DNA from: Caecitellus pseudoparvulus
Lineage: Eukaryota > Protista > Bigyra: Bicosoecida
DNA: 64,000 nucleotides
Direction of reading: 5' to 3'
NCBI GenBank assembly: GCA_965644315.1
Contig: CBFFRQ010000032.1
Location: forward strand, 434,001 to 498,000
Part shown: one piece after another, positions 17,812 through 50,400 of the stretch
How positions within the stretch are numbered: the first letter of the stretch is position 1
Layout: each line of letters begins with the position of its first letter
Program-made: the position numbers and the translations under genes
The notes under the pieces: model-generated
Seen by the model: only the letters and a program-made list of their open reading frames with translations
Told to the model about the DNA's origin: nothing
Databases searched by the model: none

Positions 17812-17823
17812 GGTGGCAGGCGT

Positions 17824-17831
17824 GAAATGAG
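17824..17831 (-). promoter_or_regulatory. Putative initiator element (CTCATTTC) just upstream of the methyltransferase-like ATG
   Basis: Matches the YCATTYY-type Inr known from oomycetes. Similar CATTC/CATTY words sit upstream of the CSN3, ankyrin, PiT and cadherin starts. No TSS data. Confidence 0.3.
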
Positions 17832-18238
17832 TTGCAAAGGGGTGGCTTCCGGGACAGGGGCAGTCTCCCAGGGGTCCAAACGAGCCCAGAGACGGAGCGG
17901 CGCCGACCTGCCGTGCACGGAAGGCTGCTGGCAGCCAGGCGCGAAAGCCACGTGTACCGAGCAGGAGCGGGGCCGTCTCTGGGGCAGGGCAGGGGGGGAG
18001 GTCCGCGTTGCTGCCCTGAGGAGCCCTGACCAATTCCACGTGGCAATTCACCGAGACCGGCAGTTTTACTCGCCCCACCCCGACTGCCTGACAGTCGGCT
18101 GGCTGGCAGCAGTACCTGCCAGCGCTGCCCAATTTCCGCACTCCGTTCCCGGGCCGGTGCTCGGCCATTCCCTGCGCGGGGCAGTCTCCCAGCCGTGCAG
18201 CTGGAAGCGGAGTTAGTGTGAGAGCATTGGGTCTTGCC

Positions 18239-28052: not shown

Positions 28053-29026
28053 CCCCACCCGGCGCAGTTCCTCAAGCGGAAACCTTGCCCCGGATACAAG
28101 GAGCGCGATGGGAAGACACGTGCGCTCTGGGCGTGTCTTTGATGATGAAATCGTCCGGGTTGGATCCGCACTTTGCACCCTTTGCCACGCATACACACTC
28201 GCTACGTCGCCCTCGACTGCTTGTTTTGCCCAGCACGCAGCGTAAGCTGCAGCGGAGCTTAAAATCGGACAGAAACCACAGCCAGCGCCTCGTAGGTGAC
28301 GATTCTTCCGGAAAGGCAAGCAGCTGGCTCTTGCTCAGGCCACGCTCCTTGGTCAGGGGCAGGGGAAAGCCGCACCATGCCAGGGCGGAAATGCGTCCGC
28401 TGGAAACGCCACCCGTGCAATGCGGCCTCCACTCAAAATTCAGCCTTGGCACACTCTACCCCTCGATACCTCTCGGTTGGGGGAGCACGGAGCCTCCTGG
28501 GGTTTCGCAGGCGTGAACAAATACGCTGCCCACTCTTGCTTTGCTCCCGTTGCCGCACCGCGACCCGCCACTTGCCCTCCACTGCTGCTGCTCTCGCGGC
28601 CCTTCCAGCCAAGTTTCGCGATTCGTGGAGGCGCACAGCGAAGTTTCTTCTGGTTTACACTGCATATCAGCCACATTCACCGTGAGTGAAGCGACAGCGG
28701 ACGCGTTTTCGACGCTTGGCTTTGCCAGGGGTGTGCGGGGTTACAAGGCGCGCAGAGCGCATTGCCCGACCGCCCGCCGCCCTGTGGGGCGATACTGCCC
28801 ATGTGTAGCAAGTATTGTCAAGCTCCTTTGCTAAGCTGCATGTGGCGCACTCATGGTCCCCTGGCCGCGGCATGGGCAGCAGGCGCTGTGTATGCGCTCT
28901 GCTGAAACGCCACGCCATCCCAGCGCATTGCCTGTGCGCTCTTCGCGCCACTCGGCGTTGCGTGGGGACATTCTCTTTGTAGGCATTCATACATTCTTGA
29001 CTGCTGCTCCCATGCACAGTGTTTTC

Positions 29027-32000
29027 ATGGTGCGCGCCGGTCCTCTGGCGCTGGCCGTGCTGGCTGGCCTGCTCGGCGCTTGCCAACTCGCTGGCGCGGC
29101 TGTCGTGGACACCATCTGCACGGCTGGCACTGCCACCGCAACTCATTGTACGAAGGAGACCACGAGTGGGGATGAATATAAGTCCCTGTGTCTGGAGCAC
29201 ACCATCAGCGTCAACGAGAACGACGCCTCGTGGGCCACCAGCCTTGCCGACAACTTCATCAAGGACTTGTTCCAAGGCTATGATGGTAGCTCAGGCACTT
29301 ACTTGGGAGGCTACACCAGGACATGGCACAATAACAGTGAGTCCACTTCGGAAACTCTGTCCAACAGCTTGAACCTTCTGTGACTCTGCGCCCTCGCTTC
29401 TCCCTGCTGCAGATGACGACTACGGGCTGAAGACCGACTACGGTCACATTGCCAACGACCCCGACCCATCTCTGCAATGGGACGACGATGGTGGTGTGCT
29501 TGGTGTCACCTTCTCAGCTGCACGGGGCAACAAGTACGTCATCACCTCCAACATGCCGCTCAACTACGAGACTGCAAAAGACATGGGAGGGGGTGTCCGT
29601 TCGCTGTACATGCTTATCCGGGCCTGTCGAGACAAAGACCTGAACTCCGACGCATCTGTTGCTTCAGATGCAACGTGCAATCCGAACTCTGGAGACTTAG
29701 ACACAGACTATCGTCTGCCTGAAGACGATGACGATGACACGAATGGGAGCTCAAATCCCGAGCGCCGATCGGTTTGCTTGCGCATTGACGTTCAAGATCT
29801 GGACGACCCTCCTGTGGACGACACGACAGACTCCACAACCTTCGGTGTGGATGAAACCCAAGCAACTGGAGTTCCTTTCGGGCCCAACTTGCTTGTCTCA
29901 GATGAAGATGGTGACACCTTGACTTGGACCATCACAAGCACAGGCGGAGCGCCGGTGGCGCTGCAGAACTCAACTGGCACTTCAAACCGACTGCAGCTCA
30001 CTGCGCCCCTGGATGCAGAGCCCACTGTTGATACGTTTGCTATCACAATTGACGTGACTGATGGCACAGTCACCATCACTCTGAGCCTGTCCATGACGGA
30101 AGTGGATGTGAACGAGGTCCCCGTGCACACGAGCGGGGCCCTGGCCGTGACTGTGCCCGAGACACAAGCAACGGGCAACATCGGCGCCGCTCTCACCGTG
30201 ACCGACGAGGACCTGCCCGCTGACACCCTGACGTGGAGCGTGCTGGCGCCACACCACACGCTGTTTGGCTTCACAGCCGGCACGACGACTAGCGGCGGGT
30301 CCAAGACGCTGCAGCTGCTGTCTGCGCTGGACTACGAGTCGGCGACGTCGCACACGATCACGGTGCGTGTGAATGACGGGGCTGCGAACCTGGACCTGTC
30401 GTACACGGTGACGGTGACGGATGTGAACGAGGTCCCCGTGCACACGAGCGGGGCCCTGGCCGTGACTGTGCCCGAGACACAGGCAACGGGCAACATCGGC
30501 GCCGCTCTCACCGTGACCGACGAGGACCTGCCCGCTGACACCCTGACTTGGAGCGTGCTGGCGCCACACCACACGCTGTTTGGCTTCACTGCCGGCACGA
30601 CGACTAGCGGCGGGTCCAAGACGCTGCAGCTGCTGTCTGCGCTGAACTACGAGTCGGCGACGTCGCACAGTATCACGGTGCGGGTGAGTGACGGGGCTGC
30701 GAACCTGGACCTGTCGTACACGGTGACGGTGACGGATGTGAACGAGGTCCCCGTGCACACGAGCGGGGCCCTGGCCGTGACTGTGCCGGAGACACAAGCA
30801 ACGGGCAGTATCGGCGCCGCTCTCACCGTGACCGACGAGGACCTGCCCGCTGACACCCTGACGTGGAGCGTGCTGGCGCCACACAATTCGCTGTTTGGCT
30901 TCACAGCCGGCACGACGACCAGCGGTGGGTCCAAGACGCTGCAGCTGCTGTCGGCGCTGAACTACGAGTCGGCGACGTCGCACAGTATCACGGTGCGGGT
31001 GAATGACGGGGCCGCGAACCTGGACCTGTCGTACACGGTGACGGTGACGGATGTGAATGACCTGCCAGAGATGACGACAGGGTCCTCCACGTCTGTCAAC
31101 GAGAATGTGTCAGGCGACATTGCCTTTGATATCACTTTCACCGACGAGGACATTGGCCCAGACACGCTCACATGGAGTATTAACTCGATCACGCCAGCGT
31201 CGGGCTTGTTTTCGCTGACACCATCCGGTACCACGTCTGGAGGAGGCACCAAGCGCCTCACTCTTTCGTCGGGCGCAAACCATGAGGCGGCGAGCTCCTA
31301 CGCAGTGACAGTGCGTGTCAGCGATGGGACTGGCTTTACCGATGAGGTGATCACAGTGACCATCAACGATGTGGACGAGCAGCCGTACAACCTTGCTCCA
31401 GCAGCGCTGAGCATACCTGAAGGCACGACAGGCACGCTCGCAACATACACAGCTGCTGACGAGGATGCATCGACAACGTTGACCTGGTCCATCACTGGCG
31501 GGAACCCGGCCTCTTTCTTCTCCATAACATCAGGTGGTGTGCTCACGTCCAACCCGATTGATTTCGAGAGTCCGCCAACGTCGTACAGTCTACAGGTGCA
31601 GGTGACGGATGGTGACACGACGCCAGTGTCCATTACCACGAGCATCACGATCACGGATGTGAATGAGGCGCCTGTGTTGACAACACCCGGTCCCTTCACT
31701 GTGGGGGAGTTGTACGCAACAGCGACTTGCTTCCCCGCCCTGCTGGAGGCTGACGACCCCGATACAGCTGACACGAATATCGACTTTTCTTTGGTCAGCC
31801 AGACGCCGTCATCCCCAGCCATCTTCAGCGTGATGACAACTGGAGGCCACGATGGCTGCATCCAGGTATCGTCCACCATGGATCACGAGACGGTGGCGTC
31901 ATTCACGCTGGCGGTCAGGATGTGCGATAACGAGGGGATGCCCACCACAGTGTGCCATGATCAGAACGTGGTGATCAACGTTTCCGACGAGCCTGAAGCG

Positions 32001-35000
32001 CCTTCCTCGCCGACCCCAGTAGGCCCTGTCAGTGTCTCGGAAGGTGCTCCCCACGGCACGCTCATCGCTACGCTGGACGCCTTTGATCCTGAAGGAGCCG
32101 ACCTGACATGGGCGTTTACAGGTGGGCAGGAGAACATGACCCTCACAAACTCACTTGGATCAACCGCGACCCTCACGGTGAACGGGTTCCTGGACCACGA
32201 GTCCGCTTCTTCCATCGTGGTCAGCTTCACGGTGTCAGACAACGAGGGCTTCAACGTGCCGCATTCCTTCACCATCAACATTCTGGACGTTGACGAGGCG
32301 CCAGTTCCACACCCACAGGCCCTGGACATTGACGAGAACTTGCCGCCTGGGTCCACCGTCGGCACCTTGTCTGCATACGAGCCCGAAGGTCAGCCAGTCA
32401 CGTGGTCAATTCCAGGCTCCGGTGCTCCTGACCAGGCATCGTTTACAGTCACGTCAGGTGGCGTGTTACAAACGGTTGGCTCGTTCAATTTCGAGTCGAA
32501 GAGCACGTACACTGTGCGGGTGGATGCGGAGGACTCAACTGCCCACGTTGGTTTCCGCATCTACACTGTCACGGTGAACGATGTGCCAGAAGACCCGACT
32601 GTGGCAGACAGGTCCGACAGTGTTGACGAGAACAGTCCCGTGAGCACGACAGTCACGACGATGGTCTTCTCCGACCCAGAAGATGGCACGACAGGCATGA
32701 CGTTTTCCATCACTGCGGGCGACCCGACGGGGTGGTTCGCCATTTCAAACGCAGGCGTGATCACCGTCGCCAGGGCCCCGTTGAACTTCGAGGAGGACCC
32801 ATCTTTTGTGTTGACAGTGGAGCTGGAAGACTCGACAAGCCGCACCGACACTGCAACAGTCACCATCACTGTAAACGACATCAATGAGAACCCTATCGTC
32901 GCAAGTGGGCAGACACGCACGATCGACGAGGCTGTGTACGATGGAGAGCTTGTGGGTGCTCCGCTGGTGGCTTGGGACTGGGACAATGATACCATTTCGT
33001 GGAGCATTGAGTCAGGGGACCCGAATGGTGTCTTCAGCATCCACCCGAGCACTGGACAGCTGGAGATCAGCGACAACTCCACGGTGGATTACGAGACCAC
33101 AACCTCATACTCACTGACTATCCGTGCCACAGACAACGGTGCACCGATTCTGACTGGAGATGCAGTCGTCGTCGTGTCTGTGTCTGACGTCAACGACATT
33201 CCCGTTGTTTCTGCGCATACATACACACTTCCGGAGAACTCCCCCGATGGGACTGTCATCACCACAGGCGGTGTTGGGCTTGAAAGTCTTCCGACTTACA
33301 CAAGTGATGAGGACACAAACGCCTTGTTTGACGGACCGTGGACCTTCGACAAACTGTCCGGGGACCCGCGTTTTGAGGTGCTCTCAGATGGCAACATTCG
33401 AGTTGCTGCCGGGTACGGTGGGGAGGGGCTTCTCAACTTTGAGGTGCAGTCTTCCTACTCCATCACGGTGCGGGCGAGAGACCAAGGAGGCGAGTACTCT
33501 GCGGGCACGTTGATCACCATCAACTTGACAAATGAGCCCGAGGCGCCGTACGTGGAGGACTTGGCTGTCACCATCAACGAGAACGTAGCGCTGGCTGCTG
33601 CAGCAGCCCCCACCATGGTGTTTTCCGACCAAGACACGGCAGACACGCACACATGCGCGTTAGAGGCACCCCGTGATGACCAAGACCCGTTGGACCCTGG
33701 CAACTTCCTGTTTGATGTCACTGCCACGCCACCGTGTACCATTCGCCGGGCCTCTGCCTACAAGATCGACTACGAGCATACGATGGGGTCATACTTCGTG
33801 ACTCTGCGTGTCACTGACTCTGGGAGCCTGAGCAACACTTCCACGATTGATATAAGCGTCATTGACCAACGCGAGCCACCTCGCTGGGTCTCAGATGATG
33901 GTCAGTGGGACCCTCGCTTTCCGGATGCTGCTTATGTTGACACTGCCACGGTGGCCGAGGTGGCCCCTGCAGGCACCACGGTGTTCCAACTCTTTGCCTT
34001 CGATGAAGACGCTGGGCAAAACGCCACCATCTCGTATTCCATTCAGTCTGTCAGCAATGGAGGAGCAACCTACTTCACTGTGGATTCCGGTACAGGAGTC
34101 ATCTCCACCACGCCTGTGGGCCACTTTGCTCTGGATGCAGAAGCGGGCATCGTGTACTCGATTACTGTGCGAGCGACAGACTCCCAAACTGATTTCACTG
34201 ATGGCACTATTCAGGTCAGTGTCGGAGACTCCCCTGAAGCGCCTGTGTTCATCAACAGCACGCGGTTTGTGTACGAGAATGCTGCGGTTGGCTTTGAGTT
34301 GCAAAGTTTGCCTCTGACAGCAGGCTTGAACGATGGCCATGCTCTGGAGTCCACAGACTCTGACACTGGGTCGTCAGCCACCTTCTTCATCATCGACGGG
34401 AACACCGAGGGAGTGCTGGGTGTGTCCCCACCAGGACCGTCGCAGTACTTGATTGTACAGGACCCAGGGGCGACACCAGTGGACTTTGAGCGCACATCCT
34501 TCTACAACCTCACCATGCGAGTGACGGACGGCACGGGCTTGCATGGGTACGGCACGATGGACATCGTCGTTGTGGACGTGGACGATCCGCCTGTCATCAC
34601 ATCCCCGAGCGCTGCATCTGTGGAAGAGTTGCTGCCGTCTGGCACGCCACTTTATCAAGCTACTTTCACCGACGACGACGGAGATGATTGTGCTTGGTCA
34701 ATCACAGCTGGCGCGGACCCTAACGGACCTGCGGACTTCATCGTCACGCCAGGTGGCGAACTCCGCACCAACAAAGTGCTGGACTACGAAGTTGACCCGA
34801 AGGAGTACAACATCACACTTCAGTGCATCAACGACAACGCTGGGTCCAAGCCGACTCCGTGGGGTGTTGGTAGCGCGTCATTGACAGTGCGTGTCGCCAT
34901 CATCGACAAGAACGATGCACCCATCATGAATGATGTGACTTTCAGCGTCGATGAGAATTCCCCGCCTGGAACTGTACTCGGTACGGCTGCAGCGTCTGAC

Positions 35001-38000
35001 CAGGATTTGGCCCTGGGCGGGCAGACCCTTACTTGGAGCATCATTGGAGCCAGCAGCGAGCAAGCACTGTTTGCTGTTGAAATTGCTCCCATGACGGGAC
35101 AGATCACCCTCAGCAGCAACGTGTCTGCAGTGCAGAACCATGAAGCCTCCCTGGACTTTGAAGACACGCCTGTCTTCACGATCACAGTTCGCGTGGTCGA
35201 TGATGGTTCCAACGATGTGCCTCTGGATGACACCTGTGTCGTGACAGTGTCGTTGAATGACTTGAACGAGGCACCGATCGTGGACTTCACCACGATGTAC
35301 ATTTCTGAGAATGCCCCACCAGGGTCTCAGGCCAGCTTCAACCGAAGCGGCTGGGAGTGGTGGGGGCAGGAGGCATCCGCCCTGCGCTCGCCCTTCTTTC
35401 TGATTGATGTACTGGGCTTGAACGATGTGAATGACCAGATCGCGCTGCAGACAGCTCATGATGCGCTCATACCCTCAGGGGATGGTTTTGTCGTCCAGGA
35501 TGGAGATCTTGGCGCCTCCCAGTCATTCACCACAGAGCTGTACTTGCTGAGTGGAACAGGCTTCCAGCACGCGGCCGACACAGCCTACGTGACCAGCGGG
35601 GGCACCAGCACAGCCCGCATCACCTCCATGACGGACGCAAGTTATCCAGCCCCCGCGGGGCAATGCTGCTCTGCCTCACCTCGCCTGAGCCGAGGCGACT
35701 TTCTGCCAGGAACCAACTCCACCCTTGGGCGCGGTCTGTACACCTTTGACGCCATTCCACGAGCAGTCTTTGCGTTCGACTCTGTCGCTCGAGTCATCAC
35801 TCTGGTGAATGGCACGCTGAACGCGGAGGCGACTCCACAGCTGCAGTTTCTTGTCAAGGTGCAGGATGACGGCACTGGTGGCATCGGCGCAGCAGAGACT
35901 GCGTACTTCCTCCTCAACGTGGAGGTGGTCGATGTAAACGAGCCCTCAACTCAGCGGCTGTCCGCGCCCGCGACCATCAGCATGAACGAAAATGCGTTGA
36001 TCGGCGATGTGATTGCCGATACCTTCTTGACTCCGCAAGACGGGGATAACCAGACCCTGTTCGTGAAGGTGGAAGACAGCAGCGCAAACTACTTCAATAT
36101 GAGCCCCATCTTCTCTCACCGTGACGTGAACGGCACGCGCTTGCCTTCCGTGTTCGAGGTCATCCAGCCATTTCTCCCTTCTGGCCTGCGAGTGCTCAAA
36201 GTCCAGATAGTCGACCTCGACGATCCGCGCAAGAGCTCTCGAGTCCTGGACATTGTCCTCACTGTGGCAGATGTCAACGATCGACCCACTCTGCCTGCCA
36301 TTACGGGATTGAAAGTGCCTGAAAACAGCCCTGTCGGCACGATCATCGCGACAATCGAGGCTGTGGACCAGGATGACTACCAGATGCTGACGTACAGCGT
36401 CCAAGGCAACTTGCAAGCATACTTTACCATGGTACACGTGTCAGAAAACCTTCTGACGAGGTATCCCGATCCAGGACCGAACGACACCTTTCGTGCAGTT
36501 CCTGCGGAGGTGCGCTCTCGATACGCCCCCAACCCTTACTTTGGAAACATCACCCGCAAGGCTCACTTGGTGGTGGCCCAAGACAGCATTGATTTCGAGT
36601 CCATGCAGCACGATGCTGTGAATGGTGAGTTCAGGATTTTCATTCGGGTGCAGGACGAGCACTATGTTTCCGAAGCTGGTGTTTTCTCGGAACCGACTGA
36701 CGAGTCGCCGCCTGCCTTGACTCATGAGCTTCCGTTCATCGTCGAAGTCGAAAACGTTCCTGACGACCCCGTCATTGAGAGCGTGACCACCATTTCTCCT
36801 TTCGGGTTGACCACAGCTGGTGGTGAGGAAATCACGCTCCGTGGGCGAAACTTGGGCTCCACCTTCAACCCCCACCCGCTCGTGACGCGGCGCCTGGAGG
36901 CCCGCTTTCAGTCAGCGTTCACGTCAGAAACTTTCCCAGGCGTGAACTGCCGCGTGACACAGATGTATGTGGAGGTGAAGTGCTCGACTTCTCCCGGGTT
37001 TGGCCCGGACTACTCGTGGCAGCTCGCGTACGGAGGTTACACCCCCACCGACAGCCAGCTTCAGCAACTGTCCAACTGGTCAAACGATACAGTGACGTAC
37101 GCTTCCCCCAACCTGGTGGAGTTTCTGGGCCCGGGGTCACAAGACGCGAGTACTGCTGGCAACCAGCTGGTGCGCATTCGCGGCTCGCAGTTCGGCACTG
37201 TCGCTGCGAACCGCATCGATTCAGTGACGTACGGCCCTACTGGATCAGAGTACAATGCGACAGGATGTCGTGTCGTCGTGGACCATTCAGCCATCGAGTG
37301 CAACACTTCAGAGGCTGTGGGAGCCGGCCTGCGGTGGGTAGTTGTCATCGCGGGGCTGTCCTCCCAGACCCCGACCACCTCGTACGCTGTGCCTACCATC
37401 ACAAACACTTGGGTGAACCGGTCAGACACCGGCACTGCAGGCACAGCGCGCACGTCAGGGGGTGTAGACTTCCTGATCATCGAGGGGAACAACTTTGGGT
37501 CGGTGTCCGAGTTCCCGCAGCAAGTGGAGCTAGTGCAGTATGGCCTCCCAGAGTACCACGACAGCACACCTAACCCGGACACTCCCAAGGATCAAGATTG
37601 CGCGGCTGCTGCTCCAATCGTGTCCCCTGGAACTCGCCTGAATCCCTCCTTGGACATGGTTTTGACAGCCACAAAGTGCCGTGTGATAGTGAGCCACACC
37701 ACCATCCAGTGCACTGTGGCGCCTGGCATGGGTGCTGGACTTCACGTCCAGGTCACCATCCGAGGGCAAGTGTCGCCTTTGTCCCCCACATCGATTTCCT
37801 ACGCGTTGCCCCGCGTCGACACGGTGCGCAGGCTTGGCACTGTGTCTCCACTTGGTCGTACTGATGGCACCTCTGTCATGGTGCTCGATGGCGAGAACTT
37901 TGGACGTACCAACGCACTGTTCAGAGTGTTCTTCGGCAGCATACTGTACTCCGCTGCCGGGGCCTTGCTCGGATCCCCTGCAGAGCGATCGTTCAACATT

Positions 38001-41000
38001 GAAACTGGCTCTCACACCTCCAGGCAGTTCACCGCCCCCAAGGGCCATGGGTCAAACATCAGCATTGTCGCTGAGACGCAGTGCCAGCGGTCCATCCCGG
38101 TCACGTCTTTCTCGTACCTGCCCCCAGTGATCACTGGCATGGATCACATCGACGGTGGCCTGGCCAATCCCCCCATCCGCATTGAGGTGTTTGGCGAAAA
38201 TTTCGGCGCCTGCTGCTATGTCCAACGCCTGGCAGTTGAGCGCATGGCTGGCCCCGGTACGCCTCCCCTGTCCGCCGCAGAGGTGGAATCCATGCAGTGC
38301 CAGTGCATTCCAGGGCAGCGTGAGGTGGTCACAGTGTACCAAGCAGGCACACTGATCCCCTACGATTGTGAGATCCTGGATTTGACCGAGAACCGCATTG
38401 AGTGCAACTTGGAGTACTCCCAAACTGTCAACCCTGACAACAGCACTTCGACGAACACTGTGCTGAACGGGCATGTTGAACTTGACGTGGGCGGGCAGAA
38501 GTCTGACAGGTTTGCCTCAGCTGCGACGTACCAATACGGAGACTTGCTGGACAAGCCTGACATCACTGCAGTGGTGCCAAACACCGCCCCCACGGATGGA
38601 GGGGTGACGATTTCCCTGCGTGGCTTCAACTTTGGCACTCGCCGGGAGAACATCTACCTTCTCTACTGGTTTCCCAACAGCACAGCGACACGGCCGTACA
38701 GGGTCAGCATCCCCCCCACACGCATCACTCTGTGGTCCGATCAGATGGTGAACTTCACCATTCCAGCTGGACAAGGCCGCCCTGTGATTGAAATGGCGTT
38801 CTCTGGAACGACAACGTTTGCGCAGTGGGACCAATTCGAGTACCAGCGCCCGACCATCGACGTTGTCCTCAACGCAGAAGGCCACACAGATGGCTTCCTG
38901 CACGCAAACGCCGCCATGAACCCGAACCGGGGCCCAGGTGACGTCCCCATCGCTGCCCCCTTGCTTATTCTGCGTGGCAGCAACTTCGGCGTGCGCACAC
39001 AGCTTGCCGCTGGATTCGTGGCAGCGCCTGGCATCGCGTTGACCCCCGACGCATCCAGCAAGCTGGAGGGTGGCCTCATCGCGCAGCTTGCCCCGACTTC
39101 CAACGGCATTCCTGCTCTGCTCCCGACGGAGCGCTTGGAGAACTTCGTGCTGGTGGGTGGCAAGCAATGTGCCATCGAATCCTGGCAGTTCGACGAAATC
39201 CGCTGCAGGGCACCTGCGGGTGTCGGCGTGGGCCACGACATTGTCATCCACCTGTTTGTGCGGCGCTTCCAAGCACTGCAGCAAGACATGTGGGTGAAGG
39301 TCACTGCCCCTATACAGTACAGCTACTACCCGCCCTCCATTTCCGCCGTGAGACTGGTGCAAGACGTCACGGGCAGGCAGCTTCAAGGCGCAGCGGATCG
39401 CCACGGGCCCACAACTGGTGGCGCATTGGTGGAGGTTCAGGGCTCATCTTTTGGTGCAAGCGGGCTATTGTCATCCAGCTCCCGCCTTGAGATTTCCGTC
39501 AGCTCTGCGGCCGTCACTGACATCCCCGTGCATACGCACAGCATTGTGCGGTTCCGGTCCCCCGCAGGGCAAGGCACGAACTTGCCACTGTTGCTGCGCG
39601 TGGCAGGGCAATCAGTGACGGTTCCTTTCTTCAACTACGACGCCCCTGCCGTGCTTGCCATTGTGGAAGAACGCTCCGTATCCAACCTGCAGCCCACGAA
39701 TGTGAATGCTTCCTCCACCGCCCAGGGGCAGCTGCGCTTCAACGCGAAAGGCTCTACACTGATCGTAACTGGGGCAAACTTTGGTAACGATCAGGTCCAG
39801 CCAGTCGTGCGCATCGGTGATGCAGAGTGTAAGTACAGCTCCCACACACAGACTCGCATTCAGTGCGATATGCCTTCGACAACCGTGGGCCCGAAGTCCC
39901 TCTTAATTGAGGCAGCCAACCAACGGCTCTCGCTGCCCCAATCGACCTCCCGCATCTTCGGCGAGTGCAGGCGGGGGTTCTTTGGTGTGCTCCACGGCGT
40001 GGATGAGTGCTACGAGTGCCCCAAGTGCTTGGAAGCGGCCTGTGAAGACCTTGACACTGTCACCACCCCGGCGTCAACGTGCAACGGCGGCACTGACCCT
40101 CCCGTTGCTGCCAGCGGATTCTGGCTCTTGAAGCGGTCGGAGCTGGGGGCTGATAACGCCCTCTTGGCCCTGTCTTCAGAGTATGCGCAAGCAAAAGCCA
40201 AGGAAGCGCTGGACAACATTGCGGCCGCCAACAACGCAACCGATGACGGCACATCTCGGTCAGAGTTCATCTTCACTCGGTGTGTCCCTGCGGAGGGCTG
40301 TGTCGGAAACAACACCTGTGCAGTCGGGTACCTGGGACCTGCCTGCTCCATTTGCCAGGCCGGCACGCACCAGCGCGACCTTATCACTGGCGGCTGCACT
40401 CCGTGCCCAGAAGCCCCGGAGCTGTACATGTTGGGCATGCTTGTGGCGGCCATTGTGCTTGGGGCCGTGCTGTTCAAGCTGTACAAGAAGGGCCCATCTG
40501 TCGCGGCTCTTGGCATCGCTGTGGACTACTTCCAGGTTCTCTCCGTGTTCAGCACCCTGTCGCTAGACTGGCCTGAGTCCATCGTGATGGTCTTCCGCAT
40601 TGCCTCTGCATCGGCTGCCTCCGTGGAAGTGACTTCACCCGAGTGCTCCGTGTCCATGACGTACAACCAGAAGTGGTATGGGCAGATGGCAGTTCCCTTA
40701 GTGGCCATTGTGGTCCTGGGCATCATGCACTGCTTTATCGTGTTCAAGAAGTGGCTCAAGTTCCGTGGGCGGGTCGTGGACAACGCAAACTACACCAAGC
40801 ACCTGCCAGCCATGATTGGCTTCCTGTTCATGTTGCTCTCCTTCCTGTACATTTCCCTGTGCGGCAAAGCCTTCGAGGTGCTGCGGTGCAAAGACGTTGG
40901 CGGGCGCCCGGTTCTGCAAGTGGACACTGAGGTGCCTTGTGAAGGCTACGACTACGAGCGCATGAGGTGGTGGGCCCGGCTAGCCATCGGCGGGTACGGC

Positions 41001-44000
41001 GCTGGCATTCCTCTCCTTTTTGGCCTGATCGTCTTTAAGTCCTCCCAGAAGATGAAGGTGGACCAGGCCCTGCGCATCCGCAACCTCGCCGGCAGTCGCG
41101 ACACCAACCCGTACTACGACATGCAGAAGCGGTTCAAGCGCCTGTATTTTAAGTTCAAGCCTGAGCGGTACTACTGGCTGCTGGTAATTCTGGCGCGTAA
41201 GTTCCTCATCGTGCTGGTGTCATCTCTTCTATTCGAAAAGCCAATGCTTGCGTCGACGTCCACCGTGATCGTGCTCTTTGCTGCCTACTCCCTTCAGCTG
41301 CTGTACATGCCCTACCGGCAACACACCCAGCAGTCCAAAGACGAAGCCGCTGCGTCCGGGGCACTGGGAGACGAGATACCTCAGCACGTCTTGGACAAAC
41401 TGAAGGAGGAAATGGCTGCAGCTGCAGGTGGAAAGAAGGCTGCAGAGGCGAAGGAGGAGGACGGCAAGGGCGCCAGCTCGACGAAAGTTGCCGTGCCAGC
41501 TGCACCTGCGGGGGCTGCGTCTGCGAGCCACTCAGTGGTGAACCCCCTCATGCGCAAGCCCAACCCGAAGGCGCTGGTTGATGTGCACCGGCGTGGCGTG
41601 GAGCTGGATGGCATGTTGGAGGATCGCCACCTGCTCATGGCTAATGACCCCACCTTCGTCATGGCGGCACAGCCTTCCTCGGCCAACCGTAGCGGCTCAC
41701 AGCGCACCCGGTCCTCCACCGTGGCACGGCTATTCTCCTCCGGGCCTGCTGCTGGCACCATGTCCGGCAGTGCCAAAAAGCTCACTCGGGCGCGGAAAAT
41801 GTCCACCCGCACCCTGGCCATGCACCGGCGGGACAGCGAGGCGCCTGATTCTGTGCCTGCGTCGTCCCAGGCTCAGGGTCGCCAGGGTGGCATGTGTTCG
41901 TGCTGCTCACGTAGAGGGAAGGGTGCCGACAGCAAGCGGCAGGCCTCGAAGAAGGGCGCGTGCTGTGGACTGCTGCCTGCCAAAGGCACTGCAGTGGATG
42001 GCCTGCAGCTTCGAGAGGAGGCCCGAAAGGGTGGCAAGACGAAGGTCAAGGTGAAGTACCTGTACGACTACAACTTGCTAGAGACAACGGTGTTGGGCTG
42101 CAGCATCTTCGTGCTGCTGTCGGGAGTCATGTTCAAGAGCGCCAGGGCCACCAAAGAAGTGCCCGCTGGCAGCCCAGACTCTGTTGCCTTGGAGATCGCT
42201 GTCATGGTCGTCGTGATTGGGTCCACCGTCATCTGCGTCACGACTGTGTTCGCTGAGTTGGTGCTGGGCTTCAAGTACTTCATTTGGGCGGGGGAAGTGC
42301 GGCGGCAGCGGGAGAAAGAAGCCAAGCGTCGCGCCATCCTGGAGGGTCGCAAGGTGCAGCTGACTCGCGAGCAGAAAGCCCTGCTCATGTGGTCGAAGGT
42401 GGTGCATGGCTGCCCCAAGAGTGTGCGCCGGGCCTGCTCATGCTGCTGCAATGTGCCTGCGCCCACCATCATCACTGGCGCTGCGTACAAAGCCACCATT
42501 CTTAAAGTTGCCAAGGGCAAGACCAAGGAGACGGCAGCCATTCGCAGCGGCAAGCGCAAGAGCACGAAGGGGGGGCGGCGCAAGAAGTCCATCCTGTCCA
42601 GGGGCCGGAGCATGCGCCTGAGCCGCAAGTCCATGGCTGCCGGCATTGACTCGGACGAAACCGACAGCGAAAGCGACGGCGAGCGGCAGAAGCGCGAGGA
42701 GGCAGAGAAGTTGGCGGCCAACGCCAAGGACATTCTGTCTGCTGCTAAGCCCAGCGGACGTAGAGTTGCTGGGCTGGGCGTGGTGGAGAACGCAACCCCG
42801 CGTGAATTCTCCCACCTGAAGTCGCAGACCAGTACCAGCATTCATGACAGCAACGTGCGCCGCGAGGCTATCCTGGCCCGACTCAGGGCCGCCACCAAGG
42901 CGAAAGGGCAGCTACCGGCAGGTGTGACAGCGCCCACTGCCGCGGCGTCTTCTGCTGTTGGCGCGGCGTCAAGCAAAGCGGGTAAGCTCATGGCTGACTC
43001 TGGCGAGCGGGAGCTGACGGAGGAGTCCACAGATGCCCAGCGCTCGTACCTTGCTGCCCAGCGCGCTGCAGCTCAAGAGGCCGCCCTGGCCACGCAGCTT
43101 GGCCTTGAGGCAGGCCTGGTGACCCGTGCTGTCAATTCGGCGGCTGCCGCAGGCATCCTCCGCACAGACGGCGATGATTTCATGATGACCGCCGCGAAGA
43201 AGAAGAAGGCAATCGGCATTGCACGGTACGCCCTGTCCATCCACTTGGGCAAGATCACCAAGCTGGCCGACAAGCACATCAAGACTGGGCAGCAGCTGCG
43301 CATGACCCTGAAGACTGGCTTCCAGAGCGAGAAGCTGCAGTTCGAGTACCACCCTCTGTTGGACATTCGCATGCGCGAGGTGAAGCTGCTCATCTTCAAC
43401 CCCGCAGAAGACACGGTGCACTGCACCCTGTACGCAGACTTCAAAGATGGTAGTGGGTCCTTGGGCCAGCACGAATTGGTGCTGGGCCACCTGCACTTCC
43501 GAACGGACGAGCTGCCAGAGCCGAAGGAAAACCGCCGCGAGGAGCGCAGCTTCACCCTTCGCCAGTATGACGGGAAGGTCAGCGGCAGCCTGACACTGCT
43601 GATGCGTCTGCAGCACCGTGGCTCGGCAGTGGATGACTGGGTTGAGCTGGGCATGGGCACCCGCTCGTCGGCCATGCCCCAGCCCGAGCATCAGCGTCGG
43701 GGGCTGTTCCAAGGCCCTCCCAAGTCTGGCTTGGTCACGTTGCAAGGCGAAGCCATCCCCGCTGCCGGCGACGCCTTCGCAGCACACAACCCGCTGTCCT
43801 CCAGCATTCTCGCCACAGCCGCGTCAGACTCAGACAGCAAAGCCCGCCCCAGGCAGTCCAGCTCCGACAGTGATGGGCCTGCGCGTCGAGCTGCTGCCTC
43901 TGCACGGGGTGGAGCAGACTCCAAGTCTGGACCCAGCTCTGATGCCAGCAAGTTGGCAGCCCTCAGCACAGGTGCCATGGCCAACACCCGCCGAGGCAAG

Positions 44001-44216
44001 AGCGCGACGGCTGTGCAACATGCCGTGCCTTCACACAGTGCAGCGCGAGGTGCACAGCGCTCCGTATCAGGGGTTCCCTCTGGGGCTGCCATGGCGGAGG
44101 AGTTCGGCGTGCGAAGCCCCCTTGCCCCCAGCACTGGCGGCAGTGCCGACCGCAGTCGGGGCAGGGCCGGGGGCGCCGCTGCTCCTGGGAGCAGCTCCGG
44201 CTCAGCAGCTCAGTAG
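29027..44216 (+). CDS. Giant cadherin-IPT/TIG-9TM receptor (nonagonal cadherin-like) with cytoplasmic C2-like domain; exons 29027-29336, 29413-44216 (~5,037 aa; alternative ATG 29012)
   Basis: Signal peptide MVRAGPLALAVLAGLLGACQLAGA. A 76-nt GTGAGT...CTGCAG intron joins exon 1 to the 4,906-aa ORF in frame. ~21 EC repeats (xE, DxD, LDYE/DFE, DxNE-P linkers) to ~36770; ~9 IPT repeats (G..I.I.GxNFG) ~36770-39960; Cys-rich stalk ~39960-40410; nine hydrophobic segments ~40420-42290. Confidence 0.9.
30105..31049 (+). repeat. Three near-identical 315-bp tandem units (starting 30105, 30420, 30735), each one 105-aa cadherin repeat
   Basis: Each unit begins GATGTGAACGAGGTCCCCGTGCACACGAGC; spacing is exactly 315; units differ only by scattered substitutions. 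Confidence 0.97.
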
Positions 44217-44412: not shown

Positions 44413-47400
44413 TCAGATGATGCCCAGGAAGCGCTCCAGTTCCTTCCTCAAACGCAGCCAAATGTGCCGCGGCAAGCAAAGGGGATGTGAATGAGCCTGC
44501 AGCACAGCCTCCCTTTGCGCGGCAAGCAGCAACTGCGACATGGAGCGCTGCAAGGCGTTCAACAGATCTTCTGAGTTGTAGTCAAAGCGGCAGCCGCTAG
44601 CAGGCCGGGATGAAGTGGGCAAAACGGCGGGCTCGGGTAAAGGTGGCACAACTAGCGCTGCTGTGAGGGAGGTGCCCCCCTGTGTGATGGGAGTCCGGTG
44701 CCATGGTTGAGGGATGGCTGCAAACAGTCTGCGGAATTGATCAAACGACCGATGAACTATGTAGTGCAGGTGGTGGCACAGGGTGTTCCCCCTTCCATCC
44801 AACACTGGGATGTGTTGAACTCGAAGGCAGTACGCACCGACGGCAGGACCTGGCTCCTGCGCCGTGGCCCCGCTCGCTGTGCCTGGCACCAGGAGAGAGG
44901 ACAGGTGCGACGTGGACGCGTAGTGAGCCGCTGCGGCTGAGGCTGACGGATTCCACGCCAGAACTGAAACATGCTGCACGAAGAGCACCAGCGCTCGTCG
45001 CCGCCGAGCCAGAGCCGCCTGCTCCTGCAGACGCCCCAGAGTTGAAAAAGGCCCATGCTGGTTCGCTTCCAAAGCATCCTTCATCGCTCGGACGGCAGCA
45101 TGCTCAAGATGCAGCAGTGCCTTGCGATCTGGTTGGCTGTGCAGAGCATTCTGCACAGCAGTGAGTGCAATGGCTGCCCGGGACACCGGGCCAAGCAGGA
45201 GTGCCCAGCCCCGCTTGGAAGACTGCACAGTCACACTCAAGACATGCGCGTCCAATTGCACCTGTAGATGTGCTTCAGGTCCTGCCACACTCACACCTTC
45301 CTCTCCTTGCTGAATGGCCCCCGTGTCGCTCATTGGCGCCTCCTTCACCGCACACAGTTCACCTGTTCCGAGCGCGCCCTGAGATGATTCCTTTGTGGGG
45401 AATAAAGAGCAAGACCAATGCACAGCGTTGCTCGTCGTGTGCAAAATGCGGATCTTCTTGTCTGTCAGGAGCATGACAAACGGCGCAGTGTCTGGCTGTG
45501 GACGGCGTGGCATTGCTGGGCGCTCCTGTGGCCCCCCCGAGGCAGCTAGCGAACCATCAGAGACAAGAACCTCGCGCCCGTCCAGGGACATAAACCTTGC
45601 AGTGTGGCCATTGCATAGCGCTGGCTGAGCGGGCCCAACGAGCAGCCGTGCAGCGCCAGCGCCCGCTTTGGCTTCCGCTGCGCCAGGTGTTTGTACTGGA
45701 AAGGCAAGGCCGCCAAAGGCAGGGGAAACCAACATGCGGGGGGCTCTGCTATGCTGAAGTTGCACTCCTGCATGCTCCCCTACCCTCATCTGATCGGAAT
45801 CTGACGCACGTAAGGCCTGCGCCTCACTTCCACTGCCGTCGTCGCTGGGCAAAGCTTGTCCGTCAGCAACATCGACTTCCCCGTCCGCCGCACTCTCCTT
45901 CGGCGCGCGGTCGGAGCCTCCTTCGTGGTGATGCGCAGCATGCATGGACAGTGCTGGGAAGTCTGAAGTCCACTGCTGGTTCAGCCTGCGGTAGGCGGAC
46001 TCGTGCGCGCCGGGCGTGCCTTCGTCAAACAGCTGCATAGCATAAATCGGCGCGTGGAAACGATACACCTCCCCCACAGCCTTGCCTGATGCAGACAGCA
46101 AGTACAACCTGGCCATGCCCTCCGCTTCCCGGCGAGAGTAGGGAGAGATGAGGGCCCGACCACCACCTCCAGGGCCGCCCCCCAGAGAGCGAGGCAGGCG
46201 CTGCCGTACTCGTAAGTTCAGCTTTTCCTCCCCTGTGATGAGAGAGGAGCCTGCGCTAACTGTGGAAGAGGTACTGCTCAGCAACAGCAAGGCCGAGTCC
46301 AGCGCCCCAGCGGTGGGCTTCAGGACAAAGCCCACCAGCCCCTTGCCGAGGCCAACTGCAGCGCCCATAGCCCCATCTTCCTGAGCTCCATAGTACGGTG
46401 CAGTGACCAGGCCCGAGGTGCCCTGCCACAATCCCCAGAGCAACGATTTCCCCCCTTCTAAAACACCCAAGCCAATATGAGCTGGCCCCCTGCCACCTGC
46501 TGCCGCATTGGCTGCTCTTGTTGCCGCGCCGGCAGTGTCAAAGTCGATGGAGCGCACGGCCCGGGCCAAAGAGTGGACAATTTTCCCACCAGAATCAACG
46601 ACCCCAACCGTAGTGTTGGACACGAGGCTAACTGCCTTTGACCCCAGCGCCACGGCACTTGACCCTGCATCCTGGCCTGACATCAGCCCCTGCGCCGGCT
46701 CGTACAGCACTGAGACGACGTCGGCAGAGATGTTCTGCACCAAGCCGACTGGGTTCCCAAGGAAAGACACCGACCCCACGACCTTGTAGAAGCCCCTCAC
46801 GATGCTGCTGATGTAGAAGGACGAAATACGCGCAGTCAGCATGGACGTGTCTTCAAACACGTGTGGCGCATGCAGCGAGCCAACCTCGATGGGGGCATGG
46901 TCCACATTCAGGATGAGCGTGCCCAAGCCGAGGATGATATTCTTGAGGAAGCCAAAGACAGGAATGTCAGGAATGAGCTTGTTCAAGAAGTCCACATCGT
47001 CCCCAAGCGACAGGGTGATTTCGATCAAAACCGGGTGCAGAGTCAAGGAGCGGATGTACAGCTTGCTGGCGCTGCTGAAACCTCGCAGCACCGCGCCTGG
47101 CTGGCTCAGCTGGGATAGCCGCGCATCGGAGAAAAGCTTTGACCTGACACTTGGCAAGCGCTGCACCGCTGAATAAGACCTGTCCAGTGCGCTTAAGACA
47201 TTCAAGTCGTCGCCCTCTGCCTGCGGAGGTGCAAGTTCAAGCGGCGCCCCCGCCTGCTCAGAAGCGGCCTCTCCGGTTGAAAGCGCACCGCTTACGTCTG
47301 GGCTCTGAGCTGGACTGGGGGCGCCGCTTGCACCTTGGGAGTGCAAGTCAAAAGACGACCATGTCCTCTGCAGACGACGAGCAGTGTCCTCCTTCGCCCC

Positions 47401-50400
47401 TGCTGCCGAGTCTGGTCCAAAGCGGAGGTGGGCAACGAGCTCAAGCACTGCCCCAAGCAGCTGGTCGTCCACTTCAATGCCCAGCCGGACCAGCCGCACA
47501 GCCAGGTGCTCCACATAAGTAACCTTAGGGTGAGACTTCAGATTCAAGGAGACCGCCAAGAGGGGGTCGGCCGCAGCTGCAGCGGCTGCCTCTGCTGCTC
47601 CTGCGTCGTACGGGTCTCCGCCTTGAAGTGCCGCGGCCACCCCATCTGGCGCAGCGGGACCCGTCATGGAGGTGTCCACTAGCGCCACATCCCGGCGGTG
47701 GCAAGTGCGCATCTGCTGTAGTGTAAACCGCTCGTCTGGTGTGGGTGATGCGATGCCTGCTGGCGCATCCACCCGCCCGACGATGATGCGGTGAGCCGCG
47801 CCTTGCAGTTGATTATCGACCTGCAAGTGGCCGAGACTCACGTCGAAAGCAGTGTCCCCAGCATGGCTCATGCTCGCAGCGGTCTTTACTCCCGTCAGTG
47901 ACATGAGTAACACTTCGCGGGGACGGTGGTCCACGATCGACACGACGATGCCCTCGATACTTATCTCGGCCACCATTGACGGCACTGCCGCCTTCGCAGC
48001 GAAAAGAGGGACCCACTCCTGCACCACACGAACTTGGGGTGCGTCAAACTCCTCGTCGTCTCGCAGGTCTCTACTTGGAAAGGCCACAGTGGCAGAGGGG
48101 GGTGACAGAGTATGCCAGCGATCTGTGCCCTGCCCACCTGGCGCAAGCGGGATGAATGCACGGTGTGCAATTGACGTGTCATGGCGGGATACTTGCCCTG
48201 CTGGCACCTGCTGCGACTCAGACAGAACTCCGCGCTGTCCGAGAATGTATGACATCGGCGCGCTCTGGACCTGCAGCTGCCGCCCGACTGTGGACGAGCC
48301 ATCCAGCCCAGGGGCCCCGACACAGCACAGCTCTGGCTGTGTCCCAGTCAGTGGTACAGCTCCGTCGGGGATGTCTTGTAGTGAGGTGTGCTTTGCAGGA
48401 GTGGCAGCTTGCCCTGCGGCCTCCCCTGTTGCCGCCGAGAGCAAGTCGCGCGCAAAAATCTCGAGCGAGATGTGGGGCCCAGTTGGAATCTGGACCCCTT
48501 CCGCGGAGGCAGTCAGCAAGGCAGGGGGTGCTTTGCGACCAGCTCGCCTCGCGTCGTCCCAAACACTGGATGGTGCCCCGTGTTCTACCAGCTGCAGCCC
48601 AGAAAGTGCGTCGAATGCGTGCGAGCCAGGTGAGAACTGGTAGTGAGGGCCAGGTGACGTGCTGAACCGCTCCAGCGCTTCAGTGGCACGGCGGCCCTGA
48701 GGGTGATACTGGGGAACGTGCAGCGCAAGGTCATCAACCCCCCCACCAGCGCCTCCTGCACGCATGCTGAGGACGCTTGCTATTGCTCCAGCAAGCTCGG
48801 GGCCAGGCATGGACGCGGAGCGTGCCCCAGCATCGCAGACAAGAGGAGGGGGTGGAACCATGTTCCCGAACTGACACATGGAGCCCCAGTACGTTGACAG
48901 CTCGCCGCCATCTCCTGGAGGCAGCAGAGGAGTGCCGTCGTCAGCTGGAATAGCGCTTGCAGGGATGAACCTCAAGACAACAGGATCATCTGGAGAAGCA
49001 CCGGCGACAGCCGCCTGAAGCAGTGCAGCGGCTTCCTTGAACGGTACTCCTGCCAAGCACTGCTCTCCAATGTGTGTCACCAGGCTTCCCACCGTGATGG
49101 CCTCGCCTACCCGTTGGCAGGTTGGCTGCACTGCCGCAGCCAAGACTTCAGCAGCAACAGAGCTGACCTCCAGCGAGAACGATTGCAGCCCCAGCTCTTG
49201 CATGGGTGCCAGTTGGGGGACCGACGCCACACTGCTGCCTGACGAGAGTCTCGCATACGTATCCGAGTCCACGAGTGCTGCACCCTGCATAGAGACACCC
49301 GGTCGCCCTGAGCCAGCTGCGGCGGAAAGCGTTTGGCCCTGGGCAACCCCGATCACCCCATCCGACGCCCCGACGCCCGAAAAAGGATTCATGCGCTGTG
49401 CAGCTTGCGAGCGGGTTTTTCGGGCTGCCGCGCGAGCTAATTCCTGCAGCCTGCCCTCTGGCTGCCCACGTAGCGCTTCTGCTGACGCTGGTACAGATGC
49501 CAACCCTCCCCCCTCGTCACTGTTCAAGCTAAGTGAGCCAACATGGAGGTGTGATGTAGATGACCCTTGAACAGCGTTCCAGCGTGCTGCTTGGGCGCGT
49601 ACCAACTCGGCCACCTCTGCCTCACGCAGGCGGGAAGTGAATGCTGGACTTGCCTGTGCTCTACGGAAGCCAAGACCCAGTGGCGCACCCACCACCTCCA
49701 CACGAGCAGTGGTATCCGCGATGGGTGTCCGGCGAAGGGTGTGTCCAACTCGAAGGGCAGAGTACAAGCGGCCAGCCTGGCAATTGGAAATGAGCCTGTC
49801 AAGCTCCTGGTCGGGTAGAGACCGCAGAGCGAGCGTGAATGTGCCAAGAGATTCACCTTCGCTTGAGCCACCCGCACCGGTGGGCGCCCGCATGGCCTTG
49901 TAGTGCCTATCCCCGGGTGGCGCTTCCTGGGTTTCGGTGGCAAGATGCTCTTTCGAGCCCTCAGCCTGTCTTCGCGCTTTCTCGCTTTGAGCCAACGCGA
50001 CCAAGCGCCTCGTGACTCCTGTCAACCCACGTCCTTCGACAACCCGGACCTGCAGCTGCTGCCCCACGACCCGCCAGCGAAGGCTGCGGTCAGCTGGCGC
50101 GGCAGGCGTGCCCTGATCTTGCAACAGAGCAGCCTTGGGGAGCACGAGAGGTAGGTGGTTGGAGGCGGGTGGAAGCGCGGCCCTTGCAGCGGCGTCCACT
50201 GCTCCGGGGATCCTGCGCAGCATTCGCCTGGCACCTGAGGCTGTCTGAGCCACCGGAGCTGCTGCGAGCAAGTTACCTCGTTCCAAAGCTGCTGCTGGTG
50301 CTGAATCAGCCTGTGCTCCAGTCAAGTCACGCTCCACTGCGCGTCCTGCCTCTGGAAGTGGGTGCGACTCGGCTGCAGCGCCGCCTGGGAGAGCGTCCGC

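Follow-up and report, generated by a model that had tools for sequence, protein, structure and literature searches.

A predicted giant single-block nonagonal cadherin of Caecitellus pseudoparvulus and the kinship of its nine-helix membrane core

The stretch of DNA analysed here (hereafter the window) comprises 64,000 nucleotides from Caecitellus pseudoparvulus (GenBank assembly GCA_965644315.1, contig CBFFRQ010000032.1, positions 434,001 to 498,000 of the forward strand). It carries on the plus strand a two-exon gene (29012-29336 and 29413-44216) for a product of 5,042 residues, in which cadherin repeats, IPT/TIG repeats and a Cys-rich stalk precede a predicted nine-helix membrane core and a long cytoplasmic tail. 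Judged by its predicted architecture, the product answers to the published description of nonagonal cadherins, a kind already known, and would be a giant single-block ('mono-modular') one. On profile evidence, its core is a divergent relative of PF06011, the TRP-like domain of the fungal Flc/Pkd2 proteins. Nucleotide positions below refer to the window, and domain positions in amino acids (aa) refer to residues of exon 2. All searches were made with exon 2 or its parts, and exon 1 was scanned separately. The features of the gene, all on the plus strand, are as follows.

29012-29336 (+): exon 1, with start codon, signal peptide and start of the N-terminal tip (translation; h-region read directly)
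29337-29412 (+): intron, 76 nt, GT..AG (sequence; joint 29336->29413 in contigs of two metatranscriptome runs)
29413-44216 (+): exon 2, a single open frame to the stop codon, 4,933 codons from 29415
29838-35264 (+), aa 142-1950: 18 consecutive clear extracellular cadherin (EC) repeats (local hidden Markov model [HMM], independent E-value [i-E] 1e-15 to 1e-28 each)
35292-36752 (+), aa 1960-2446: three degenerate EC repeats (local HMM i-E 8e-5, 0.024 and 1e-12)
36786-39959 (+), aa 2458-3515: nine IPT/TIG repeats, 8 significant and 1 degenerate (Pfam TIG, local HMM)
39963-40412 (+), aa 3517-3666: Cys-rich stalk, 150 residues with 13 Cys, the last repeat DUF7630 / ephrin-receptor-like
40416-41309 (+): predicted transmembrane segments TM1-TM7 (hydropathy, AlphaFold2 [AF2] helices, invariant columns, hhalign to PF06011-positive proteins)
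41310-42071 (+): cytoplasmic loop TM7-TM8, 254 aa, basic and of low complexity, with Cys clusters (predicted local distance difference test [pLDDT] < 50)
42072-42257 (+): TM8 and TM9, with a conserved beta-hairpin and an invariant N..E motif before them
42258-44213 (+): cytoplasmic tail, 652 aa, mostly disordered (no Pfam match)
43221-43625 (+): predicted C2-fold domain of about 135 residues within the tail (conservation, AF2, Foldseek)

Gene model and transcript evidence

The longest single frame, counted from its first listed start codon, runs from 29496 to 44216 (4,906 aa) and stays open upstream as far as an AG acceptor at 29412. Exon 1 lies in a different frame; its first ATG, at 29012, is followed by a second in-frame ATG at 29027 and then by a typical signal peptide with a hydrophobic h-region. 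The exon stops at a GTGAGT donor at 29337, and joining 29336 to 29413 drops 76 nt and keeps the frame. An earlier, sequence-only reading of the window had proposed a protein of about 5,000 aa that starts at 29027 with a signal peptide. Its length and signal peptide agree with the two-exon model, and 29027 is an in-frame ATG, albeit the second one.

Contigs of two marine metatranscriptome runs from different studies, X1 and X3, join 29336 to 29413 and skip exactly 29337-29412; the shorter side of the joint measures 94 letters in X1 and 51 in X3. Run X8, for which no library type is recorded, lacks the joint. RNA contigs tile most of 29.1-34.8 kb. The sequence-only reading had raised the possibility that RNA would split the open reading frame (ORF); beyond the 76-nt intron, no further splice joint was seen in the RNA contigs over 28900-34800. 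As assembled contigs, the RNA data show presence and splicing, not transcript level or ends. The gene is a genuine, transcribed one, given its intron joint in two RNA runs and the RNA contigs along 29.1-34.8 kb.

Cadherin, IPT/TIG and stalk regions

Pfam Cadherin was matched in 10 stretches (E = 2.7e-116), Cadherin_4 was matched as well, and TIG was matched in 3 stretches (E = 7.9e-21). The repeat map was drawn with local HMMs built iteratively on the protein and its homologues, and it contains 21 EC repeats in total. They are contiguous over aa 142-2446, and the sole break is an insertion of about 130 aa within one repeat. Motif alignment shows that the repeats keep the Ca2+-binding motifs xEx, DxD, DxE and DxNDxP, as in animal cadherins. 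When scanned as a piece of its own, the degenerate EC stretch matched Pfam Cadherin with an E-value of 4e-7. The N-terminal tip of about 250 residues (exon 1 plus exon-2 aa 1-141) ends in a DLDDPP linker and has no Pfam match. In the stalk, DUF7630 was matched by 7/7 members of a seven-sequence alignment (A1; best E = 3e-5) and Ephrin_rec_like by 4/7; the Cys columns of the stalk are invariant in A1.

Most of what the sequence-only reading had described was recovered. Specifically, its run of about 21 consecutive EC repeats corresponds to the 18 clear and 3 degenerate repeats of the local HMMs, its approximately nine IPT/TIG repeats to 8 significant and 1 degenerate, and its Cys-rich stalk to the region with 13 Cys and DUF7630 / Ephrin_rec_like matches. 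Its placement among nonagonal cadherins with a single EC block is supported, at the level of architecture, by the EC Ca2+ motifs, the nine predicted passes and the contiguity of aa 142-2446. Among the three Pfam families that it had named for checking, Cadherin and TIG were matched and C2 was not.

Two local features of the EC region may be recorded. The insertion, at 35328-35726 in the first degenerate EC repeat, is not cadherin-like and has no family match. Three neighbouring EC repeats (approximately 30130-31060) are near-identical, with few residues differing, which suggests a recent tandem triplication. Over the same interval contig depth in run X8 is raised, so the copy number of these repeats may be uncertain.

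The nine-helix membrane core

Hydropathy identifies nine hydrophobic segments, seven in aa 3668-3965 and, after a 254-residue loop, two in aa 4220-4281. In an AF2 model made from the seven-sequence alignment all nine are long helices (pLDDT 70-89), and the 7 + 2 pattern is conserved in 6/6 homologues. The loop between TM7 and TM8 is disordered in the model and differs in length between homologues. Loops assigned to the cytoplasm are rich in K/R, in line with the positive-inside rule, and the outer loops hold three conserved Cys. This pattern fits an extracellular N-terminus and a cytoplasmic C-terminus. The nine transmembrane segments of the sequence-only reading are therefore predicted, at the places it had named, by hydropathy, AF2 helices, 6/6 homologues and the positive-inside rule alike.

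Approximately 75 columns are invariant in the 7 sequences, which are only 26-70 per cent identical. They include residues within the membrane, namely D and Q in TM2, R and K in TM6, and N and E at TM8, and the outer loops of TM1-TM7 have conserved paired Cys. Because of these invariant columns, including charged or polar residues inside transmembrane helices, the core is, on its pattern of conservation, more constrained than an anchor needs to be and under selection as more than an anchor. Cys clusters (CSCC, ACCG and CSCCC) occur in the long loop and just past TM9 (41310-42071 and 42258-42700), and these clusters beside the membrane may be palmitoylation sites.

Kinship of the core

Apart from the weak DUF7630 match, scans of the core, loop, tail and tip found no Pfam family in these parts. 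We relate the core to PF06011 because hhalign links it, in register, to three proteins that pass the PF06011 threshold. P0160, a relative found with the core (E = 1e-7), is over the Pfam cut-off and aligns with profile A1 at E = 2.8e-31. L017, an ORF of the same genome (PF06011 47 bits plus DUF7630), aligns with A1 (probability 98.4 per cent; E = 6e-15) over 329 columns that span the last Cys repeat to TM7. L016, a further ORF of this genome over the threshold, aligns over TM4-TM7 (probability 84 per cent; E = 7e-6). The L016 and L017 alignments are in register with their own Pfam PF06011 matches, which the aligned stretches overlap. In addition, a cadherin-bearing paralogue on C68 (6,066-aa frame) has a weak direct PF06011 match at the same position.

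L017 (C69:1413500-1419000) and L016 (C87:109500-113500) are smaller and carry no cadherin repeats, and a DUF7630 stalk is present in one of the two; through both proteins the cadherin-type cores connect to the TRP-like family of fungi. Within the genome PF06011 matches best at G000:C141:9933-11921 (47 bits), where the match runs across 7 TGA stops, which could reflect introns, a broken gene or something else.

ESM Atlas searches by shape and by feature led to eukaryotic clusters (haptophytes, green algae, ciliates and others), and the nearest of these bear DUF7630, Ephrin_rec_like and PF06011 'TRP'; a query with the stretch from TIG to core was uninformative, with scores of 0.80-0.83. Foldseek of the core model against the PDB returned nothing at E <= 0.1, the best row of the G-protein-coupled receptor (GPCR) class having an E-value of 0.43. 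VIA-align of the core against 48,161 chains peaked at Z = 7.9 (Hrd1, OSCA and helical repeats), which is helical-bundle background, and no match of fold is claimed. Neither the protein nor the aligned cores matched the 7tm, GAIN or GPCR families of Pfam, and no TRP_N / ML ectodomain was matched by Pfam in this protein.

The cytoplasmic tail

Within the mostly disordered tail, the C2-fold stretch is conserved in three paralogues and in P0002 and P0003, which are proteins of other organisms; these genes of the genome form a predicted four-gene subfamily with a C2 tail. The AF2 model of the stretch has eight strands and a pLDDT of 76. In Foldseek, the best match is the C2A domain of E-Syt1 (E = 2.7e-8, probability 1.00, TM-score 0.76 by target). 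There were 113 matches at E <= 1e-3, and the rows shown (approximately 45) were all C2 domains or C2-containing proteins, among them extended synaptotagmins, otoferlin, Munc13 and others, at 10-17 per cent sequence identity. By sequence, Pfam C2 had no match in the tail, and a PDB sequence search with the profile of the tail domain returned noise only (glucokinase, E > 0.04). The C2-like tail of the sequence-only reading accordingly holds as a fold, by Foldseek on the AF2 model, and not by Pfam.

The domain shares the eight-stranded beta-sandwich of the C2 domains of extended synaptotagmins, ferlins and Munc13, whereas it differs from them in having no Pfam C2 match and mainly basic rather than acidic loop residues. 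Among the invariant loop positions basic residues prevail (R63, R65), and one acidic residue, D77, is invariant too. The domain probably docks on the inner leaflet.

A family of paralogues and its relatives in public data

In a six-frame search of the genome (30.6 Mb, 215 contigs), TM1-7 found 40 matches, 38/40 of them in open frames of 2,700-8,657 aa. Pfam Cadherin was found in the same frames for 23/24 of the best matches, and these cadherin-bearing paralogues have frames of varied length (3,075-8,657 aa) and dissimilar tails. Cadherin repeats are absent from the weaker matches, of which two exceed the PF06011 threshold. The sequence-only reading had put the gene forward as the best candidate for an uncharacterised system. 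Some 23 cadherin-bearing paralogues, this gene included, occur among at least 40 core genes, and because such paralogues abound in the genome it does not constitute a system of its own.

Two pairs of loci (G000:C20:28946 and C68:862312; C65:4266 and C32:810006) score identically or nearly so and have frames of similar length; each pair probably represents haplotigs or contig duplicates, which would inflate the gene count. Because some locus pairs look like duplicate contigs, the number of distinct cadherin-type genes in the genome may fairly be put at about 20.

A profile of the stalk and core was searched against 1.84 billion representative proteins. It matched 12,997 clusters at E <= 1e-3 (the weakest of which may rest on the Cys-rich stalk alone), 4,595 at E <= 1e-10 and 858 at E <= 1e-30, with lengths of 300-7,780 residues. 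We examined 161 core-similar proteins, which were the 150 nearest representatives together with word-search matches. TIG repeats occur in 132 of them and EC plus TIG repeats in 74. Sixty-eight of the 161 have at least 3,000 aa, and 65 of these 68 carry EC repeats, up to 35 in number. The same core also stands behind unrelated ectodomains (TIG only, FG-GAP and LRR). On these counts, the architecture of EC repeats, TIG repeats, stalk and nine transmembrane segments is common in environmental data, where dozens of EC-TIG-9TM clusters reach up to about 35 repeats and 7,780 residues, and the present gene is near the upper end of the range and within it. The novelty of architecture that the sequence-only reading had allowed for is not upheld, given that the architecture recurs in 65/68 of the long representatives with this core. 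The core belongs to a very large protist family with varied ectodomains.

The sole named relative of the core in the word-based search was a TIG-9TM protein of Bicosoecida sp. CB-2014 (34 per cent identity), and no named oomycete nonagonal cadherin was among the matches of the word-based protein searches. Two database proteins, P0001 and P0007, do not count as outside relatives, as they are 99 per cent identical to paralogues of this genome; they derive from an ENA metagenome assembly and represent the same species. A metagenome locus, L011 (ENA ERZ23499096, scaffold_92), has 99.3 per cent DNA identity to the C69 paralogue locus (G000:C69), and P0007 and P0153 are 99.4-99.6 per cent identical to the C37 paralogue. 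Because scaffold_92 and P0007/P0153 are about 99 per cent identical to paralogue loci, the same species is, by sequence identity, present in a public metagenome assembly.

Comparison with known systems

Nonagonal cadherins were reportedly named in 2016 by Fletcher, van West and Gachon, and the mono-modular members described there are said to have 3-10 EC repeats. Like nonagonal cadherins, the protein combines EC repeats that keep their Ca2+ motifs with nine predicted membrane passes, and its tail lacks catenin binding. Set beside the founding members by description, it differs in its much greater length, with approximately 21 EC and 9 TIG repeats, and in its C2 tail. It has a single EC block, whereas the tri-modular subfamily consists of oomycete nonagonal cadherins with three blocks (PMC7409359).

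The TRP domain of the Flc family is PF06011, and Schizosaccharomyces pombe Pkd2 is treated as a member of that family (PMC9600462). Pkd2 is predicted to have nine transmembrane helices (bioRxiv 10.1101/2022.08.11.503631), and reconstituted Pkd2 shows Ca2+ permeability on membrane stretching (PMC9727806). With fungal PF06011 proteins (Saccharomyces cerevisiae Flc1-3, Cryptococcus neoformans Flc1 and S. pombe Pkd2) the protein shares nine helices, an N-terminal ectodomain on the outside, a disordered cytoplasmic tail and a remote profile similarity via intermediates. The fungal proteins have 700-800 aa and a small ML-like lipid-binding ectodomain, whereas here 3,700 aa of adhesion repeats stand before a core that is below the Pfam threshold and in which a 254-aa loop splits TM7 from TM8.

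The CRMPs of apicomplexans and ciliates have a modular ectodomain, EGF or ephrin-receptor-like Cys repeats, nine transmembrane segments and a cytoplasmic C-terminus (PMC9815656), and they have been proposed to sense contact for the discharge of rhoptries or mucocysts (PMC9815656, PMC9670195). The shared design comprises a DUF7630 / Ephrin_rec_like stalk on nine transmembrane segments and a large modular adhesive ectodomain; CRMPs differ in having no cadherin or TIG repeats and in acting as heterodimers.

Flamingo/CELSR proteins likewise have cadherin repeats fused to a multi-pass membrane core. Theirs is an unrelated 7TM GPCR core with GAIN, to which no similarity was found here; the sequence-only reading had taken the two cores to be unrelated, in agreement with the absence of a Foldseek match at E <= 0.1 and a VIA-align Z below 8. 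Because the core has no detectable kinship to 7TM GPCRs, it is fair to call the likeness to Flamingo analogous and not homologous.

Proposed working and alternative explanations

We favour, with moderate confidence and by analogy, a giant mono-modular nonagonal cadherin that works as a contact or tension sensor and not as mere glue. The signal peptide would send to the cell surface a rod built of approximately 21 Ca2+-stiffened EC repeats and 9 IPT/TIG repeats; the rod, if extended, might measure of the order of 100 nm. The disulfide-rich stalk would link it to the nine-helix core, whose N-terminal end would face outwards and whose C-terminal end would face inwards. A partner (prey, a surface or another cell) may be bound by the ectodomain, and binding or pulling could pass through the stalk to the core, which might then change conformation or conduct Ca2+ and so give rise to a local intracellular signal. 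Identity and architecture come from the present analysis, and transduction is drawn from the analogy with Pkd2 and alveolate CRMPs. A contact- or tension-gated signal is suggested because Pkd2 is stretch-activated and because the core is kept behind many unrelated ectodomains.

Several points weigh against a sensor of this kind. The link to PF06011 is, at the level of profiles, transitive; PF06011 was unmatched in this protein and in 7/7 aligned cores, even at E <= 5. In Foldseek and VIA-align, no solved channel or receptor is significantly similar to the core model. Channel activity of PF06011 proteins is backed by few studies, and we know of no functional data for any nonagonal cadherin. The likeness to CRMPs is one of architecture by description, not of sequence. 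Ca2+ binding by the tail C2 domain is doubtful, because its conserved loop residues are mainly basic and few are acidic. Finally, the RNA evidence consists of assembled contigs limited to the 5' 5.9 kb of the gene.

The same protein could instead be a passive adhesin or coat protein, a rod that sticks to surfaces, prey or kin and for which the nine helices serve only as an anchor. The intact Ca2+ motifs of the EC repeats agree with such a role, no catalytic or G-protein-coupling domain was detected by Pfam, and some 23 paralogues that vary in frame length and tails would suit an adhesin repertoire. One helix would do as an anchor, however, whereas no other part of the protein is as well conserved as the core, which has invariant charges inside the membrane and is kept behind unrelated ectodomains in thousands of clusters; a folded C2 domain, as predicted, is also retained in the tail. 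We therefore consider a purely adhesive role fairly unlikely. If the protein were a GPCR-like adhesion receptor, it would be a true counterpart of Flamingo/CELSR and signal via heterotrimeric G proteins. Its adhesive repeats on a multi-pass core do resemble adhesion GPCRs, and CRMPs of the same design are called GPCR-like by PANTHER (PMC9670195), but the predicted helices number nine and not seven, the GPCR, GAIN and 7tm families of Pfam are unmatched, neither Foldseek nor VIA-align gave a significant GPCR match, and the profile links point to PF06011. Such a receptor is very improbable.

It is scarcely credible that the gene is an artefact of assembly or annotation, or a pseudogene in decay, with a repeat-rich frame that is open by accident. 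The three near-identical EC repeats, over which X8 depth is raised, could be mis-assembled, and duplicate contigs are apparent in the assembly. Yet the frame is free of stops over 14.8 kb in DNA of approximately 60 per cent GC, a spliced RNA joint exists and RNA contigs tile the 5' 5.9 kb, and each domain has conserved counterparts in paralogues and other organisms.

A wider hypothesis is possible though distinctly tentative. The nonagonal core may be one branch of a pan-eukaryotic superfamily of nine-helix receptors or channels in which the adhesive ectodomains are interchangeable and are coupled to Ca2+ entry or to exocytosis on a trigger. In this predatory-looking marine protist, the repertoire of approximately 40 genes would then serve the sensing of prey and surface contact, with the present gene as a long-reach, C2-tailed member. 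If true, the superfamily would take in fungal Flc/Pkd2, the ephrin-receptor-like TRP proteins of many protists and perhaps alveolate CRMPs, and the core would be neither a cadherin-specific nor a stramenopile-specific invention. Some 40 such genes in a 30.6-Mb genome suggest that these receptors are a main touch-sensing route of this protist.

For this single gene the gain is small, as it adds one more paralogue to its family. Modestly new are the kinship with PF06011 rather than with GPCRs, the large size of the core family and the variety of its ectodomains, and the C2-tailed four-gene subfamily. The link between the core and PF06011 gives a concrete, testable idea of mechanism for nonagonal cadherins, for which, to our knowledge, none has been proposed since their naming in 2016.

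Neighbouring genes and origin of the contig

The neighbours are ordinary eukaryotic housekeeping genes. On the minus strand, a convergent gene (44413-63975) ends 196 nt from the cadherin stop codon; its open frame of more than 6,500 aa has a Pfam C2 match (E = 1e-15) and a match to the VPS13 middle region, and it probably continues past the end of the window. From these matches, it looks like a giant VPS13-like lipid-transfer protein. Upstream, 1-28052 holds genes for an ISWI-type SLIDE/HAND protein, COP9 subunit 3, a USP-type deubiquitinase, an M1 aminopeptidase, TCF25, mitochondrial Cpn60 and Pex16. A 1,121-aa ORF (15289-18651, minus strand) has no Pfam match.

The Cpn60 protein has matches without organism names at 62-76 per cent identity, and its named matches are a mixture of stramenopile and green-algal sequences. 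In a small Cpn60 tree, the gene of the window falls in a well-supported clade of environmental sequences. With two named groups sampled, this clade is weakly sister (80/72) to diatom, brown-alga and synurophyte sequences, apart from green algae. A stramenopile origin is plausible, being weakly indicated by this placement and by the Bicosoecida relative of the core.

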